A stretch of 64,000 nucleotides of DNA, taken from positions 753,954 to 817,953 of the forward strand of contig RDEW01000008.1 of the NCBI GenBank assembly GCA_011109175.1, in the 5' to 3' direction. Position 1 is the first letter of the stretch. Each line of letters begins with the position of its first letter. Position numbers and translations under genes: made by a program. This DNA comes from Dicyema japonicum (taxonomy: Eukaryota; Animalia; Dicyemida). This document shows positions 34,209-64,000 of this stretch, piece by piece. The notes below the pieces were generated by a model. It made no database searches. It was not told where the DNA came from and was given only the letters and a program-made list of their open reading frames with translations.

Positions 34209-36150
34209 TCCAATATTAATTTTGCTTCTATACTTATTGAGACAAACAGCCCTCTCCCGAACGACAACGAAATTTCCTAAGAAACAATTGCTTATTTGGT
34301 TCCGTTCAGTTTAATTATTTAACCCAATCTCCCTAGCAAATAAGAAGCCGGAAACTTTTAGCTGGAATTGTCGAGGACTTTAATAAATCTTTCAAAAACA
34401 ATGATCCAGACATGAGAAAATCTATTAAAGGTTCGTAATAGTTCGTGAGTGATCCACGAGTCAGGATTAGTTTGCAGTTTAAAATACCTGGAGTGAATTA
34501 GAAGAGGTTTATTTTTAAGCAAGAGTATCCGAGAGACTAGATCGTCCACAGAAACGATTGACTAGATCGATCCGAGAGACTTGATCGTCCGCTTGTAGGA
34601 CAAAGATTACCGACATCTCAACAAAAAATGAGACAACCAAATGATCCTCGCAACATTATTAGCTTGATTATTTAATGTGATTAAACTGAATGTAGTTAGG
34701 CTCGATTTTTAAAGAATTTGGTGTAATACGAGCAATAGGAATGATATTTTCATTAAAATAGTTTACTCAGTTAAAGACAGATCAAATTAAGATCATCGAC
34801 AATATAAACTTTCCCAAACCTTTTTCTTGCTGAGATCCTCAAAGTTTAAAAAATTCTACATGGAGGCAATCCGATACTTTGATTTCAAATATCGGAAGCG
34901 TGACATTGGAGCTACTCGTTAGTATTCGCCGTGAATGGAATTAAGTTATGGAAAGTCTCTTTCTAAATTGAGCCAAAATTCACCGGAAACTCCAGGAGAA
35001 GTTTCAATCAAAGTAAAATGATAGCTAAGTCATTTAAGGTCTCAGTTGATTTCTACAATAATTATAATTCTCCTAGGAGTCGTTTATATTAATCACGTGC
35101 TCTGAATTAGACATTTATGTGTTTAGTTGGAATTAAAATAAATATATATTTTCGATAAAGATTAATAAATAGTCAAAATCTGTTATTTGGGAGCTGATTT
35201 ACACAAGTAGGACAATAGGAGAAACAGACATTTCCACAGTTTCTGCAGAAGGTGGATGAATTTGAAGGAAGATGCATTTCTCGAATGAGCTCTTCACATT
35301 CGGATTGCAATCTATGATGAATGTAAACAAGTCTATTTTGGTATAAACTCATATACTGAATATGATTTTGTATAAGATCACAATTCAAACACTCACATTG
35401 TTTCCACGTGGGTCATAACTACTGGGTGATTCAGGAATCATGCCAAATCCCTTTGAATTCTGATTATTGACATCACGAACAATATTTTCGTCGTTTTGGC
35501 ATGCTTTAATGATGCTATTATTTTCATATGTTGAGTCTTTTAGGAGATTTTCAATTTTAAACTTATTTTCCGTGTTTTTCCAGCCAACGGGTGGTTTCTT
35601 TTTCTTTATAAACTTTTGATGGATCTTTCGATGTCGGCACAGATTTGAGTGTTGTGTGTACTTTTTCGAGCAAAACTAACATAACAAGAATGATTTGTAC
35701 ATTACAGTAATATGGCTTGAAGGTTTTATGGACATGTGAATGCTGCTTTAGACCACTCTTTGTGTGAAAGGATTTATTGCAAAGCTCGCACATATATCTT
35801 TCTTTCTCCATGTTTTTATTTACTACCTCGACTAGAGTTTCGTGTTTTTAAAAAGCTACTTTTGTGATTCGTATGCTTTATAATGTAATTTTGCGTAGAT
35901 GCTGAGCTATGCTTGTGTTGTCGGGTTTTTCGTTGTTTGAAATAAAATAATGAAACTGATAAATTATTGTTTTTAATTTGTCCTTATTAGAATATCTCAG
36001 TAATCGCAAAATTCTTTTTGTCTTTGGGTGTATTTGAAATGATTGATAATTCTGTTTGAATGCACCATTATCAGTAATGTAGTTGATTAAAACTGATATA
36101 ATTTAAATGTTTCATAATTTGTCACGTAAAGATTTCTTATTATTGACAAA
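34209..36150 (+). repeat. Segmental duplication, copy A (partner about 59347-62580)
   Basis: Collinear, same orientation, diverged; copy B carries extra insertions at about 59600-60650 and 60784-61118. Confidence 0.85.
35173..35811 (-). CDS. 190-aa C2H2 zinc-finger protein related to PRDM3/16 (EVI1/MECOM, hamlet, egl-43) fingers
   Basis: join(35811-35701, 35675-35397, 35355-35173) is open. CELCNKSFHTKSGLKQHSHVHKTFKPYYCN|FCSKKYTQHSNLCRHRKIH parallels the EVI1 SGLKQHKHIH..KSYTQFSNLCRHKRMH motif. Introns are 25 and 41 nt. Confidence 0.8.
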
Positions 36151-36729
36151 ATTCATAGAACCATAACTATCATTATTATTATTAAAAGCAGTCGCGAGAA
36201 AACATATAATTCATGCCAGTTAATGTTTCTTGTGAGGTTGTTTAAGTCCTCTACAATTAAAAGTTCTTAGAGTGAACTAAGAAGTTGGTAAAGAGTACGA
36301 ATAATAATTATTATTACCCCCAGGATCACTGGGTCAAAGAGAAAGAAAATAAGTTCTCATCTAACTAAGTGATCCCAGACCGACAAAGGATAGGACGAGT
36401 CCGGCGAGGTCGAGAATCCTGAACAGCTCTTTTCATTGGACATGACATCGGCTTAAAATTTCTGTATGATTGTAGATATTTCGATAGTGTATGGAATAGA
36501 GGGCAGCTCGGTAAACTAGCCTCCTTTAAGAGTTTCCGTTGTAATTCAATTAAGAAATTTTCAATGGGTTGGATTTTGTGTTCTGGTCCAATTAACCTTA
36601 TTGCAGTCTCCTCGATTGCGGATAGTTTCAATGAGGAGGATCGTGAAATCTGCATTGCCCATGAAAAAACTTACATACGTCATCGTTGGTCGGATAAATT
36701 GTTCATAAATCGTGACAAGTCCACCAGTT

Positions 36730-39195
36730 TGATCTCTAAGTGTTTTTGATAGCACTTTTTAAATTCTCATTTTCTTCAGAGCAGAAGTTAGAAACTCATC
36801 TAACATACCTTACAAATTTCATCAAAGATATCCTACAGCGCAAATCTCATCAAAAGTCATTGTTATGGTTTATCGGTATAGAAAAAGCTTTCGACACTGT
36901 CCCAAGAAAAATTTTGATAAGAAAGATCTTTAAGTCTTAAATCCCAAACAACGTGAAAATCTGGATTGCTAATTTTCTAAATGAAAGAAGAGGAAGATTA
37001 ACAAATAGAAAAACTATGTCAATGACCAATTTCCATCTAAATGGGGTCTCTCAGGGATCTTCACTGTCAGCACACCTGTTCAACCTATTCCTAAATGATA
37101 TGTTCTCCCTTACCAGTGACGATACTCTGGTTCTGACATATTTAGTTGATATAATAGTAGCAGTCAAAGATCAGTGGGTTCATACTGCTGTATACCGGAT
37201 ACAAGCTTCATTGGACGATCTGAACTGTTGGCTCGTCAAGAACATTCTACAGTCAGACCCCGAATTGGGGCAGACCCCAGGGGTGGGGCACCCCCGCATT
37301 TTGGGGCATTTTTTTATTGGCCAACATTTTGGCAGAGTAAAATTGAAAATCGATAAAAAATATGGAAATTTTGGGGCACTATAAAATTGCGGGGAATGAA
37401 ATTATAAGTAAATAAAATTATATTTTATTAATAAATATATAATTTTAATTTACACATTTATTAACATTTTCTGTTGTGAATGGTTATCAACTACGAAACA
37501 AAATTAACGATTGCTAAATTGATATTGAAGAACAAATCATCTGAAAGACAGATAATTAAAAAATACAAAATTAGTAAAGGCATGATTTCGCGAATAAAAA
37601 AAACAATTGTACCTTTTCTTGAACAAGGTACTATAAACACGGATGAGGATCCTATGCCTTATTGTGAGAAATCTAAATTCGATAATCAAGTTTTTGAAAT
37701 ATTTCATAAACTACGCGAAGATAAGGTTCCAATATCAGGTCCTTTCATAAAGAAAATTGCCTTATATACGGCTTCAAAAATTGGATTTGATACTTTCAAA
37801 GCTTCAAACGGCTGGCTTGACAGATTTAAAATTCTGGATGACTGGAAATATTTTTATGAGCTGGTTGACTCGGATAAATGAAAGATTTTATACAATCAAC
37901 AGAAAAGTATTAATATTGCTTGATAATGCGGGATGTCATAAAACTATTGAATGCTCAAATATTGAGTTTTTATTTTTGCCAAAAAATACAACACCGTATT
38001 TGCAACGATTGGATATGGGAATTATCAAGACCTTTAAAAATTATTACTCAAATTATCTGATTCAGTATTTGTGTTATGAGGAGATGATGATGAATTCAAA
38101 CGGTTGATAAACAAAATAAACCTTCGTCATGTAATGCTGCTAATTTCTAAAAGCTGGGAAAAACTTGATCCAGTTTAATATTTAATTGTCGGAATCAAAT
38201 TGAAAAGATTCGTGATTCCCTAAAAATTGAAGATACCATTACAGAAGAAATGATCAACAATGCCGTAGACGAAACATTGAATGGGAAAGTGACGAATTCG
38301 TTGATAATATTTACAACGAAAAAAAAAAGATAACATGGAAACAATTCTAAGAGAAACGCAAGATTTTCTTGATCAGTTAGAGAAGAAAATTTTTTACATA
38401 TCTCCTGAAATTTCGACTTAATTTTATGAAAAATGTAAGAAGTAAAAGGATAACTAGAGATAAATTAACTGATTATTTTTCTAAAATTGATTTTTGATGT
38501 TTAAAATCTCTGTTTTATTAAACCCCTGTTTTTGGGGCACCCCCGCTTTTTGGGGCACTTGGTGCCCAATTCGGGGTCGGACTGTACATACAAGACTCGA
38601 AAAGTCTTATACAACAATTTTCACAACAAACAGAAGATTGACAAACTCCGCTCCATGTGTAACCATAAATGGAAACTCAATCCCCACGACCAACTCGGTC
38701 AAGATACTGGGCGTAACTTACGACTCACTTTTGACCTTCAGCAAACATCGACAACGTCATCTCCTCGGCACAACGAAAGCTAAATTTTGTTAAAACACTC
38801 CTTGGACAATATAAGTGGTGTTTCAACTCAAACTTGGACTCGCTCTACGTGCAGTATATTCAACCGTCTCTAACTTAAGGGTGTGCTATGGGGAGCCAAC
38901 CTATCAAACGAGAATATGGAAAAAATCAATACATTCCAAAAAATGGCAAGTAAGGCTCTGCAAAAATTTTCCGAGACACCTCTAAACCCTATACCATTTG
39001 AGAAATTAGTGAGGAAATCCGGAGCCCTACTACGCCTTAAAAAGTCAGAAACCCCCGCCCAATTCTGAAATGCGTTGGAACTCGGGAGGAACACCGAGCA
39101 AAAATGAGATGGCTAGTCGAGGCGGCCGGAATCACCTGACGGCTATGTAGTTATTTAATTTGTCGATGATTTTTGGTTTTAATAAATAAATAAAA
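36730..39195 (+). mobile_element. I-group LINE RT and 3' end, split by the Tigger insertion at 37250-38584
   Basis: IGIEKAFDTVPRK, GVSQGSSLS, YLVDI..LDDLNCWLVKNIL[TA]HTRLEKSYTTIF; homologous to the uninterrupted copy at 47000-47950. Confidence 0.85.
37250..38584 (+). mobile_element. Tigger/pogo DNA transposon 1, internally deleted
   Basis: TIRs cagtcagaccccgaattggggca and tgcccaattcggggtcggactg, TA on both sides. Psq/CENP-B HTH (FKASNGWLDRFK) and DDE remnant (LLDNAGCH, LPKNTTPYLQRLDMGII). Confidence 0.92.
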
Positions 39196-58525: not shown

Positions 58526-60249
58526 TCCTGTTTTCCACAATGTCAGTTTTTGCTGTGTTCATTCTGGGGAACCATATGTTCATCTCAGCAGGTACCACCT
58601 CGAGCACTCGAAGTAGGACCTTTGATCTTACATAAATCCTCCATTAAGAAATTTTCCATTTCCTCGAGCATAGGAAATAATTTTGCATGTATCTAATTTT
58701 CTAAAAGTTCTTATTCTTGGTCATTAAATCAAGTCAGAGAAATCGATGGATCGCTCATATAGTAGGAAGAGGAGGTAAACGTTACTACATGACATGTGAT
58801 CTTCTATAACATGAAAGACACGTTTCTTGTCCAATAGTGTTCCCCAGGGTTCTCCACTTGTTGCCACAACCTACATAAGAAAATTCCGTCCTGATCTCAT
58901 ACGCTAATGATGTCGTCATTTCTTACTGTGAAGCCACATGGGTCGTAAAAATGGCGAACTCACTGATCCCTTGGCTTACTCAATGATTACTTGAAATAAC
59001 TCCAGTGAGGATCTCCACAATCCTATTTACTTAATATATAAGGCATTACAACATCAAGCCAACCATCCTCCTAAAGAACGAGATTATTTTCCTCAATGAC
59101 ACGGCAAATATTCTGAGTCATATTCGATTAAGGGCTTTCGTGGGAAAACTGAGTGGAGCAGAGATGATGAGAATTATATCGTTAAAAACATTTCATAAAC
59201 TCTCGGAAGCAACACTGGATGCTTTTCCACCATCTACCACCAGTTATTTAATCCAATATTGACTTTATAAAAGTACATCGTGGTCAATCGCAACTCCGTT
59301 ATTCCCTGCGCAAGTTATCTACATTACAGGAACCTGTCAACGATCAACAATCTTAATTTTGCTTCTATACTTCATGAGATATATAACCCTCTCCCGAACG
59401 ACAACGAAATTTCCTAAGAAACAATTGCTTATTTAGTTCCGCTCAATTAAATTATTTACTCCAATCTCGCTAGCAGTAAAAAGCCGGCAACTTCAGCTGG
59501 AATTGACGAGTGCTTCCATAACTATTCAAGGTTTATAATAGTTTATCGTGTGATTGTTTTTAGCTTAAAATATCCGGAGTGAATTTAGAAAGGGTAAACG
59601 TAGTTAGAGTCCTCGTGGATGGCTTTAGATTTTCCGGAAGCAGAATGGGACGAAAGAATCTTAGGGAGTTAGTTCAATTTTTAATTTTGGTGGAATTAAA
59701 AATTATGGAGAAGAGTCTTTTCCAGAAATCCACTTCTCCGTAATTTTTCTGTTTGTGTTGTCTGTTCCTCTTTCACTTTTTACTCCCACACAGTGTTCCC
59801 TAGAACATTCACGTTAGAAACTCAATACTATAAATTAGCATGGAATATTTCATTCGACTAACAAGTCCAAGTTAAATATTATTCATTAGAATTTGATTAG
59901 GAGCTATGGGGTAGCACATATCCCAATCCACCCTCCATAAGAAAGACTGTGACCACTCTTTCATATGTTGGGTCACTGCAGATTAATTGATCGGTTAGGA
60001 ACTCCAATGAAGAGTCCAAGATCTTCAAGGCATAACCCGCGTTATTTTCACTGTCCTTTATTTTCAACAAACTAAATCTATAAACCAAGTTTTAAATGGG
60101 ATTAAATGATGAAAATTACACAACAAAAATATTACAGGAAAAATTTATTCATAATTTTATCACAAATTATCACCTGCAAGACAAAAATAGTCAAAAATTA
60201 TATTTTTACAATTTTATAGCTAAAGTTCAAATTATCAAAAAAAAAAGAA

Positions 60250-60500
60250 AAAAGAAATATTCTTGCCTTGGGGATCGCTACCGATTTACTCCTGTTGCGA
60301 CCGAATCATCGGGAGCCGTTGGTCCAATGACGGCTGAGTTTTTGCGAGAACTCGAGGATTGCTTGCCAGAAAGAAAAGGGATCAACGAGAAGGGTTATGG
60401 CTAAGACAAAAGATTGGAATAGCCATACTCCGAGGAAACTCGTTCGCAATCCACGCAGCAGGTTTCCTCAACTGACATTTGTTTAATTGTTAAAAAAAAA
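60250..60500 (+). mobile_element. CRE 3' fragment with poly(A)
   Basis: KYSCLGDRYRFTPVATESSGAVGP..WLRQKIGIAILRGNSFAIH. Confidence 0.85.
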
Positions 60501-60783
60501 TTATTCTTGATGCAAAAAAAATTATCAAATAATTTTTTAATAAAGGCTTTGTGTAAACGCTATCGTAGTTCATTTTAAGCAATAGTATCTCAGAAAATAA
60601 AATTTACATTTTTTCAAGAACTTACAGTTTCATGTGACAATAATAGGAACATTAAATCGATCCGACGCACTAAATCGTCCGCTTGTGGGCTAAGGATTCC
60701 TGACATCTCAACACCACTGGGACAAACAAATGATCCTCGCAACATTATTAGCCTGATTATTTAATGTGATAAAACTGGATGTA

Positions 60784-61118
60784 AGGGTAGAAAACCAGAA
60801 AGGATCATTCAAATACGTATTAGACATATGTGCTATAGAGGGACGTCACCACCTCAACCCGATACGTCGTCATGGAAGAATACTTAGATACGTCAGGGGA
60901 GAAGTTCAGAGGTCGTCAAGAATAACTCTTCTGGAAGTCCTTAATGGTGACCTGAGATCAGTAACCAGACTACTAAAGGACGGTGAAGACCTTAGTAGTC
61001 TGCGGCACTTGGCATCGGACAGGAGGGGATGGGAAAGGCTAATTAAGAGGATTGTTCAGACGCGGCACGAATAGAATTATAGTTTATATGATTCTATGTA
61101 GTTGCTTATAATAATAAT
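60784..61118 (+). mobile_element. RTE-group insertion: inverted 5' end plus sense 3' end, 12-bp TSD
   Basis: TSD aaactggatgta at 60772-60783 and 61119-61130. 60784-60859 is antisense to the element 5' end; 60860-61118 encodes the RT C-terminus and a (TAA)n tail. Confidence 0.85.
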
Positions 61119-61624
61119 AAACTGGATGTAGTTAGGCTCAATTTTTGAATAATTTTGTGTTTAATACGAACTATTGGAATGATAATATCATCAAAATAGT
61201 TTACTCAAAGACAGATCAAATTAAGATCATGAACAGTCTAAACTAGCTTTCGTCAACCTTTTCTTGCTGGGATCCTCCAGATTTAAAATATTCTGCATAA
61301 AGGCAATCCCGATACTTTGATTTCAAATATCGGAGACGTGACATTGGAGCTACTCTTAGTATTTGCCGTGAATTAAATTAAGTTATGGTAAGTCTCTTCC
61401 TAAATTGAGCCAAAATTCGACAGGAAACTCCAAGGGAGAAGTGTCAATCTGTACGATCAAAGTAAAATGAATCTAAGTCATTTAAGGTCTCAGTTGATTT
61501 TTACGATAATTATAATTCTCTTTTCCTAGGAGTCATTTATATTAATCATGTGCCCTGAATTAGACATTTATGTGTTTAGCTGGAATTAAAATAAAATATA
61601 TATTTTCGATAAAGCTTAATAAAA

Positions 61625-62245
61625 AAATCCGCTATTTAGCTGATTTACACAAGTGGAATAATGGGAAGAGACAGACATTTCCACATTTTCTGCAGGTGGA
61701 TAAATTTGAAGGAAGATTCATTTCTCGAATAAGCTCTTCATATTCGGATTCGAACCTATGATGAATGTAAGTGAGTCTATTTTGGTATAAACTCAAAACA
61801 TGATGAATATGATTTTGTATAATATCACAATTCAAACACCCACTTTTGCTTCCACCCTGGTCATAACAACTAGGTGATTCAGGAATCATGCCAAATTCAT
61901 TTGAAATCTGATTATTGACATCACGAACAATATTTTGTCGTTTTGGTATGCTTTGCTGATGCTATTATTTTCATGTGTTGAATATTTTAAGAGATTTTCG
62001 ATTTTTAAATTATTTTCCGTGTTTTGCCAGCCAACAGTTGGTTTCATTTTCTTTGTAAAATATTGATGGATATTTCGATGTGGGCACAGATTTGAATGTT
62101 TTGTGTACTTTTTCGAAACAAAAACTAACATAACGAGAATGATTTTTACATTACAGCAATATGACTTGAAGATTTTATGGACATGTGAATGCTGGATTAG
62201 ACCACTCTTTGTGTGAAAGGATTTAACTTTCTTTCTCTATGTTTT
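61625..62245 (-). pseudogene. Pseudogene copy of the EVI1-like zinc-finger gene
   Basis: ATG mutated to ATA, CxxC of finger 1 deleted, frameshift after the retained 25-nt intron. Confidence 0.82.
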
Positions 62246-64000
62246 TATATATTACTTCGAGCTGAGTTTTGTGTACTTAATAGGCTACTTCTATGATTTG
62301 CATGTTTTATAATGTAATTTCGCGTGGATGCTGAGTTTTGATTTTGTTGTCGGGTTTTTTCGTCATTTTGAAATATAATAATGAAATTGAGAATTTATTG
62401 TTTTTTATTCGTCCAGATGAGAATATCTCAGTAATCGCAAATATTTTTAATATTGCTTTTTGTCTTGGTTTGGGTGTATTTGATAATTCTATTTTGAATG
62501 CAACATTATCAGTAATGTAGTTGATTAAAGATGATATATTTAGGTTTTTCATAATTTGTCACGTAAAGGTTGACAAATTAATAGAGAAACTGCAAATTAA
62601 TAGAGAAACTGTAAATAACAATTTTTAACAGCCAAAGTAGCATTTTTATTTCACATCTAAGATTTAAAAAATAATAAGTTTTTATAAAATTTATTTATTA
62701 AGAATGAAATAGTCATTCTATTTTATGTTTTAAAACTTCGATCTTTAGAGAGAATCTTTGATACTATCGAAATAGCTCTTTCAACAGAAACAGAACTTGC
62801 TCTCTAGTTCTTAAAGTTGCATAGACATATATGGTGGAAGACTTTTATTCGGATATTATATTATTTCCAAAATCCCAGTTATTTGAAGTTTTTGGCTAAA
62901 TTCTGAAATACTCTCAATGTAAATTCCCGACATCAAACTAATGTGATTTTTTAAAGTACAATTTTGCATTAATATGATACATATCACATGAAAAATATAA
63001 GCATAGAACAATTTAAGTGAATTTCCGGCTAAAAATAATATTATATACCACTAGTCACATATCGCAAAATAAGGAGGCCGGGATTACCCGACGGCCATGT
63101 ATTCCCTTTTAATTTGTCGGTGATTATTGATTTTAAATAAAAAAGTATTAAAGAAGGTGAATATTTTAATTTAAACAAAAAAGTTACAATCTATGTTGAC
63201 TACAAACTCTGAATATTTCTTGCATAAAAATGGCTTTATATGTTTGTGCCCAGCCATCAACCAACAAATATAATTAACACGTGTCTTGTTTTTTTATTAA
63301 CCCAAAATCACCAACAGTTAATTAAAGGAATTAATTAATTAGGTGATTCCTATAAACTCTGAAGAAACTACTTAACTTTTCCCGATGTTGGACTTTTGAT
63401 CCAGCACGGCTACGGATTGGGCGGGGAGGAACGAGTATCTGGTAAGATGTCACGAAGACACTTGTTTTTTTAATTTAATGAATCATCCCAACTTGTAGTT
63501 GGCAGAACTTGTCATTTCGGGAATGCGATAGTGGGAACATGATACACTAACCGTTTACTACCATCAATTCACTCAAACACTATAATCGAGATATGGACAT
63601 CAGCCTTCTCAGTCAAAATTCTCCAACGAAAAATAAAGCTATTAGAAACTAGAATGAGAATGATATGAAAAAAATAGTAAAAAATATTAATTATTTTAAT
63701 AATTTATTCGATTTAATATTTAAATAATAGAATTTAAATTTTAAATCCACGCTTTTAAGTGTCACTTGTACTTTCTTTAGTGGCCATTTTGAAAACATTC
63801 TGGTCAATCCGGAAAGTAACATAATATTGCCAATTTCGGATCATGGCATACATTTAAGATGAACTTAAATGTTTTATATGATGATTTGATAGGGACATAT
63901 GAGTTATAATGATTTCCCATCTTTCTGATAAACTTACTATATATTGCTATTGTGTTTAAAATTTTTCTGTTTTTTAAATAAAATATCAACATATATTGGG

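Follow-up and report, generated by a model that had tools for sequence, protein, structure and literature searches.

The EVI1 family of zinc-finger proteins (EVI1/MECOM and PRDM16, with Hamlet and EGL-43) carries 6-7 C2H2 fingers in an N-terminal array plus 3 in a C-terminal one (PMC2889900). Its members exceed 1000 aa and also possess an N-terminal PR/SET domain, at least as full-length isoforms, CtBP-binding PxDLS motifs and an acidic tail. In Tramtrack and in Drumstick (Odd-skipped family), two fingers suffice as a DNA- or partner-binding module. Repressors that act through an eh1 motif, an FxIxxIL heptad that binds the TLE WD40 domain, include Engrailed and, among the zinc-finger proteins, FEZF. 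Dicyema japonicum is a parasite of the octopus, an animal of about 30 cells. Its genome, for which Platanus and Falcon assemblies were merged, has 36.7% GC content, 49% repeats, a mean intron length of 38 bp and a heterozygosity of 1.24% (PMC6736024). Here, we describe a small C2H2 gene, copy A, in a 64,000-nucleotide stretch of contig RDEW01000008.1 from this genome, hereafter the window, which has 37% GC content and is crowded with fragments of LINE and pogo/Tc5 elements.

Like the EVI1 family proteins, the copy A product contains two adjacent classical fingers, the second of which shares K-x-YTQ-x-SNLCR, and both are predicted DNA binders. Unlike them, it has 2 fingers in all and lacks the PR/SET domain, the CtBP motif and the acidic tail, and at ~204 aa it is far shorter, with the remainder of the protein having no detectable relative. 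Tramtrack resembles it through its finger 1, which is similar to finger 2 here, and a Drumstick cluster is among its nearest neighbors in the ESM Atlas. However, copy A has no BTB domain, the order of its fingers and the linker between them differ from those of Tramtrack and Drumstick, and no significant sequence relationship emerged. With Engrailed and FEZF it has in common an F-x-I-x-x-I/L-L heptad, FKIENLL, but the heptad is located C-terminal to the fingers and its F is not retained in a paralogue located nearby. Copy A is best regarded as a modest, lineage-specific C2H2 gene. The coordinates of its features are collected in Table 1.

Table 1. Features of copy A, its paralogue copy B and the duplicated blocks that contain them (window coordinates)
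Feature	Position	Strand	Content
Copy A gene	35811-35173	minus	Small two-finger C2H2 gene
Exon 1 (37 aa)	35811-35701	minus	Start codon ATG at 35811, finger 1, KTFKP linker, first Cys of finger 2
Finger 1	35790-35728	minus	Canonical C2H2
Intron 1 (25 nt, GT..AG)	35700-35676	minus	Inside CxxC of finger 2
Exon 2, first part (93 aa)	35675-35397	minus	Rest of finger 2, KKKK, FKIENLL, variable N/S-rich stretch
Finger 2, remainder	35672-35619	minus	
KKKK basic patch	35606-35595	minus	
eh1-like FKIENLL	35561-35541	minus	
Tail frame (74 aa by reference)	35397-35176	minus	CLNC, predicted helical stretch, Cys cluster
Previously proposed intron 2 (41 nt)	35396-35356	minus	Most probably coding; window one base short at 35396/35397
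CLNC pair	35391-35380	minus	44 residues before CRNC
Cys cluster C-x2-C-x3-C-x3-C-x2-C (CRNC..C..C..CPTC)	35247-35203	minus	
Stop codon	35175-35173	minus	
Copy B, decayed paralogue	62240-61622	minus	
Duplicated block A (gene + both flanks)	34211-36134	minus	Collinear with block B, 83-86% identity
Block B	59348-62571		Interrupted by insertions at ~59521-60653 and 60783-61118, both absent from block A

Finger 2 is divided between two exons, with Y-Y-C-N encoded by exon 1 and F-C-S-K-K-Y-T-Q-H-S-N-L-C-R-H-R-K-I-H by exon 2. Excision of the 25 nt between them generates a perfect Y-x-C-x2-C-x12-H-x3-H finger, and both fingers then fit the consensus C-x2-4-C-x12-H-x3-5-H exactly. On the strength of the finger it completes, this predicted intron is convincing. 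A preliminary description of the locus had listed the two fingers, FKIENLL and the Cys cluster, all of which are present on the minus strand, and had counted just two fingers; a regular-expression scan of all six frames agrees, detecting only these two on the minus strand. Database searches were performed exon by exon. The zf-C2H2 profile of Pfam gives exon 1 a score of 22 bits. Pfam scores here fall short of the gathering threshold because no exon piece contains more than one finger. Against fingers of known structure in PDB, exon 1 reaches ~20 bits for each finger (PRDM9, ZNF568 and designed fingers), with full-sequence E-values down to 1e-17 that are summed over several fingers per chain, and the matches to finger 2 are ZFP57, ZNF347 and Tramtrack finger 1.

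The gene block is bordered on its upstream side, at 36220-36830, by a very high-copy repeat with many internal deletion joints. Contig depth over this repeat is 10^4 to 10^5, compared with ~100 at the gene, a difference of 100 to 1000 times, and the repeat overlaps a degraded reverse transcriptase fragment on the plus strand (36740-37384). Further on, a fragment of a pogo/Tc5-type DNA transposase occupies 37480-38107, also on the plus strand (HTH_Tnp_Tc5, E=3.6e-9; DDE_1, E=1.6e-18).

The gene had originally been modeled as three exons encoding 190 aa, with a second, 41-nt intron separating exon 2 from the tail. Examination of sequencing reads contradicts that model. In contigs from four public runs, all of them genomic DNA from one 2019 sample, every contig that crosses 35396 contains a 1-nt insertion there, accounting for 100% of the depth. 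The insertion occurs in three allelic forms that place N, S or C at the codon, none of which is the version in the window. The extra base is found in copy B too, together with an in-frame 3-nt indel within the supposed intron. With the extra base at 35396/7, the frame of exon 2 runs through the 41-nt stretch into the tail frame, which is open from 35412 through to the stop codon, whereas removal of the 41 nt would shift the frame and truncate every read-supported allele. Given the extra base in both the read contigs and copy B, and the truncation that splicing would cause, intron 2 is not real. The corrected product is ~204 aa in length (37 + 93 + 1 + 73), with one intron and an additional CLNC pair, and the window probably owes its missing base at 35396/7 to an error in the consensus, or else to a rare allele. 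The contigs are unbroken across both proposed introns, indicating that the runs are DNA and therefore uninformative with regard to splicing.

Small insertions relative to the window are also found in all read contigs in the flanks of the gene, at 34994, 35070, 35139-35140, 35854 and 35859. The insertion at 35070 is 5 nt long and has a counterpart of equal length in copy B, ~3 bases away (after 35073), so that bases seem apt to be missing from the copy in the window's sequence. This pattern suggests systematic small deletions in the assembled sequence, or a rare haplotype.

Searching the window by tblastn with the three pieces of the gene revealed copy B, on the same strand and 26 kb away. In contrast to copy A, its start codon has changed from ATG to ATA, finger 1 has lost its CxxC to a 20-nt deletion, and frameshifts of +2, -1 and +1 bring the frame-breaking indels to four in total, alongside substitutions at key finger residues. 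Judged by these lesions, copy B is a dead gene copy, or pseudogene. It nevertheless retains an intron of 25 nt, of equal length and with GT..AG ends, that is 92% identical to that of copy A. Retention of the intron indicates that the duplication was DNA-based, and retention of its length lends mild support to intron 1. At the positions of two CACGTG palindromes of copy A, one coding (35405) and one in the 3' flank (35094), copy B has CAGGGTG (~61865) and CACATG (~61552).

The C-terminal part of the protein is an orphan. No Pfam family matched the tail, for which only sub-threshold DUF7577 and zf-RING_6 were returned; the ESM Atlas gave it no neighbor, and an exhaustive HMMER search among 1.84 billion protein representatives yielded no true relative. 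Three HMMER matches were inspected as sequences and proved to be tandem-repeat proteins, in which weak repeated matches add up. Assignment of the tail to the RING, ZAD or zinc ribbon classes was considered and rejected, as the spacings are not those of a RING and none of the three has profile support. A single-sequence AF2 model of the tail was unusable (pLDDT 47). Going by the arrangement of its cysteines, zinc binding by CLNC together with the terminal Cys cluster is plausible. As for FKIENLL, the strict eh1 pattern F.I.N[IL]L occurs once in the 128,000 residues of the six-frame translation of the window, and that occurrence is FKIENLL itself. The motif is rare by chance, expected per 200 aa at 0.019 for the loose pattern and 0.0016 for the strict form, and was picked post hoc. 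In copy B the counterpart is L-K-I-E-N-L-L. Repression via Groucho through this heptad would be conjecture only.

What, then, is the origin of the finger pair? For human EVI1 finger 6, a mutagenesis primer encodes P-F-I-C-E-V-C-H-K and a phosphopeptide reads S-Y-T-Q-F-S-N-L-C-R (PMC3680417). Aligned with these residues, finger 2 of copy A (P-Y-Y-C-N-F-C-S-K-K-Y-T-Q-H-S-N-L-C-R) is identical at 11 of 19 positions, among them the DNA contacts Q, S, N and R at helix positions -1, 2, 3 and 6; the unusual Cys of NLCRH is also common to both. Finger 1 in turn may be like EVI1 finger 5, which we take to carry SGLKQH-x-H-x-H followed by x3-K-P, and the two fingers would then be in the same order. On this comparison, the resemblance to EVI1 appears genuine and goes beyond what is generic to C2H2 fingers, and descent from the EVI1/PRDM3/16 family is plausible. 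By architecture, copy A is not a PRDM3/16 member, as it has no SET domain, no second finger array and no CtBP motif. Neither P.DLS nor its looser variants were found in any piece of the gene. Similarly, no PR/SET domain or further finger was found in the 114 minus-strand open segments of at least 33 aa between 35812 and 50000, a scan that covers 14 kb upstream and would miss exons shorter than its threshold; the only domains detected there were RVT_1 and Exo_endo_phos, which are LINE reverse transcriptase and endonuclease pieces. The preliminary description had derived the gene from EVI1 and had reported no PR/SET domain. The latter holds across these upstream segments; of the former, the likeness of finger 2 to EVI1 finger 6 stands, but the architecture of the family is absent.

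Alternatively, copy A could be a generic C2H2 gene whose finger likeness to EVI1 is convergent, the fold family being very large. Pfam and PDB return generic fingers only, those of PRDM9, ZNF568 and designed proteins at similar bit scores, and the ESM Atlas places exon 2 with generic C2H2 clusters and the drumstick cluster, the latter a lead only. In addition, Tramtrack finger 1 and finger 2 of copy A both read C-S-x2-Y-T-x2-S-N-x-C-R-H, making Tramtrack nearly as similar as EVI1. Convergence would, however, have to account for the agreement of all four contact residues and the unusual NLCRH string with EVI1 finger 6, next to a finger that presumably corresponds to EVI1 finger 5, with the order preserved, and we consider it improbable. 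A far more remote alternative is that the exons of copy A are the last of a larger gene with PR/SET or other exons upstream, or else the cargo of a mobile element. AG acceptors do lie between the upstream in-frame stop and the ATG, the EKERY preceding finger 1 resembles the remnant of an inter-finger linker, and the block was duplicated together with its flanks. Nevertheless, introns in this genome are tiny, the upstream open segments hold LINE pieces in place of SET domains or fingers, and nothing coding-like was found upstream of copy B. Read depth over block A is single-copy, on which ground a mobile-element origin of the gene block is rejected for now.

A more substantial question is whether copy A is a functional gene or, like copy B, a decaying one. 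It could be a young pseudogene, or an open reading frame from a segmental duplication that was never expressed, with its intactness due to luck. The comparison of the two copies is compatible with this: dN/dS is 0.88 (47 nonsynonymous and 12 synonymous changes), the differences are spread evenly over the three codon positions (20/20/23), and conservation is no higher across the coding sequence than in the 3' flank. Each of the eight polymorphisms listed for the coding sequence is nonsynonymous. A search of sequencing runs for RNA at the locus recovered only the four DNA runs from the one sample and no splice joints. A word-index search of protein collections gave no candidates for exon 2, nor for exon 1 (taken as region 1-40 of the read-through ORF), an exact-sequence look-up of the 82-aa ORF found no record, and the tail and the ORFs are absent from the protein collections searched, without even a self-match. 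Moreover, the window allele is itself frameshifted, and the neighborhood is rich in transposable elements. Against decay of both copies, ~204 codons have remained open in copy A, in an AT-rich genome, and none of the read alleles contains a frameshift or stop; over the same period, copy B was deprived of its start codon and acquired four frame breaks. The single-copy read depth of the region also counts in favor of function. The three read-supported alleles at the polymorphic 35396/7 junction, which are independent, all preserve one long ORF, and indels between the copies are a multiple of three in length in 3 of 8 cases in the coding sequence compared with 1 of 16 in the flanks. Furthermore, with only 12 synonymous changes the confidence interval on dN/dS is wide, and constraint on copy A is therefore possible. 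The argument for function is one of frame integrity only. Weighing these points, we think copy A is probably functional, and that decay of both copies, although a possibility to be taken seriously, is rather unlikely.

The coding polymorphisms have an uneven distribution, six of the eight being clustered at 35473-35504 in contigs from the DNA runs. Four of them fall within 25 nt (35473-35497) and are all A-to-G on the coding strand, followed by G-to-A changes at 35500 and 35504; of these six, copy B shares just the one at 35500. A divergent haplotype or a conversion tract, among other causes, might explain the cluster.

The reading originally proposed for the locus was that of a miniaturized PRDM3/16 orthologue of 190 aa and three exons, in which CtBP-mediated repression had been exchanged for Groucho binding through FKIENLL and a new zinc site had been gained, making it a developmental regulator. 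The match of finger 2 to EVI1 finger 6, the missing CtBP motif and the uniqueness of the eh1-like heptad in the window are all in agreement with such a protein. However, the exon model on which it was based is wrong, the architecture that defines the family is absent, there is no orthologue in which the heptad is seen to be conserved, and in copy B its F is L. A developmental role is not supported, as no RNA evidence was found and sequence constraint looks weak. Taken as a whole, we regard this reading as improbable, to about the same degree as convergence.

Our preferred explanation, which we believe has roughly an even chance of being correct, is that copy A is the intact one of a lineage-specific pair of gene copies and encodes a nuclear two-finger protein of ~204 aa from two exons with one 25-nt intron. 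According to this model, the N-terminal 60 residues, consisting of the two C2H2 fingers and the KKKK patch, would together bind a short DNA site. The predicted contact residues are T, S, G and Q in finger 1 and Q, S, N and R in finger 2, for which the standard recognition rules predict a GA-rich, GATA-like half-site; two fingers would read ~6 bp of DNA, aided by the adjoining basic patch. The closest likeness of the two fingers is to fingers 5-6 in the N-terminal array of EVI1/PRDM3/16, a family from which the gene may be descended. The remaining 140 residues are orphan sequence that contains the eh1-like heptad and the CxxC...CxxCx3Cx3CxxC tail, the latter plausibly zinc-binding, and this C-terminal half might serve in partner binding or dimerization. 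The nuclear location of the protein and its binding of DNA are inferred, as are the binding of zinc by the tail and any part played in repression. The product is a new, lineage-specific C2H2 protein, for which an EVI1-type finger pair is credible but unproven.

In a bolder form of this history, a PRDM3/16-type gene would in dicyemids have been cut down to its finger 5-6 core, fused to a new zinc-binding tail and an eh1 motif to give a mini-repressor of ~200 aa, and then duplicated, leaving one live and one dead copy. We consider this distinctly unlikely, but if it were true it would represent extreme miniaturization of a transcription factor. At present, the analysis yields a corrected gene model, a probable single-base assembly error and a neighboring pseudogene that provides a built-in comparison. 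Only 13 genes with Pfam zf-C2H2 are reported for Dicyema japonicum (PMC6736024, supplementary table), and each one therefore counts in reconstructing how the bilaterian regulatory toolkit shrank. If copy A is expressed and truly derived from PRDM3/16, it would exemplify the loss of domains down to the bare DNA-reading core.
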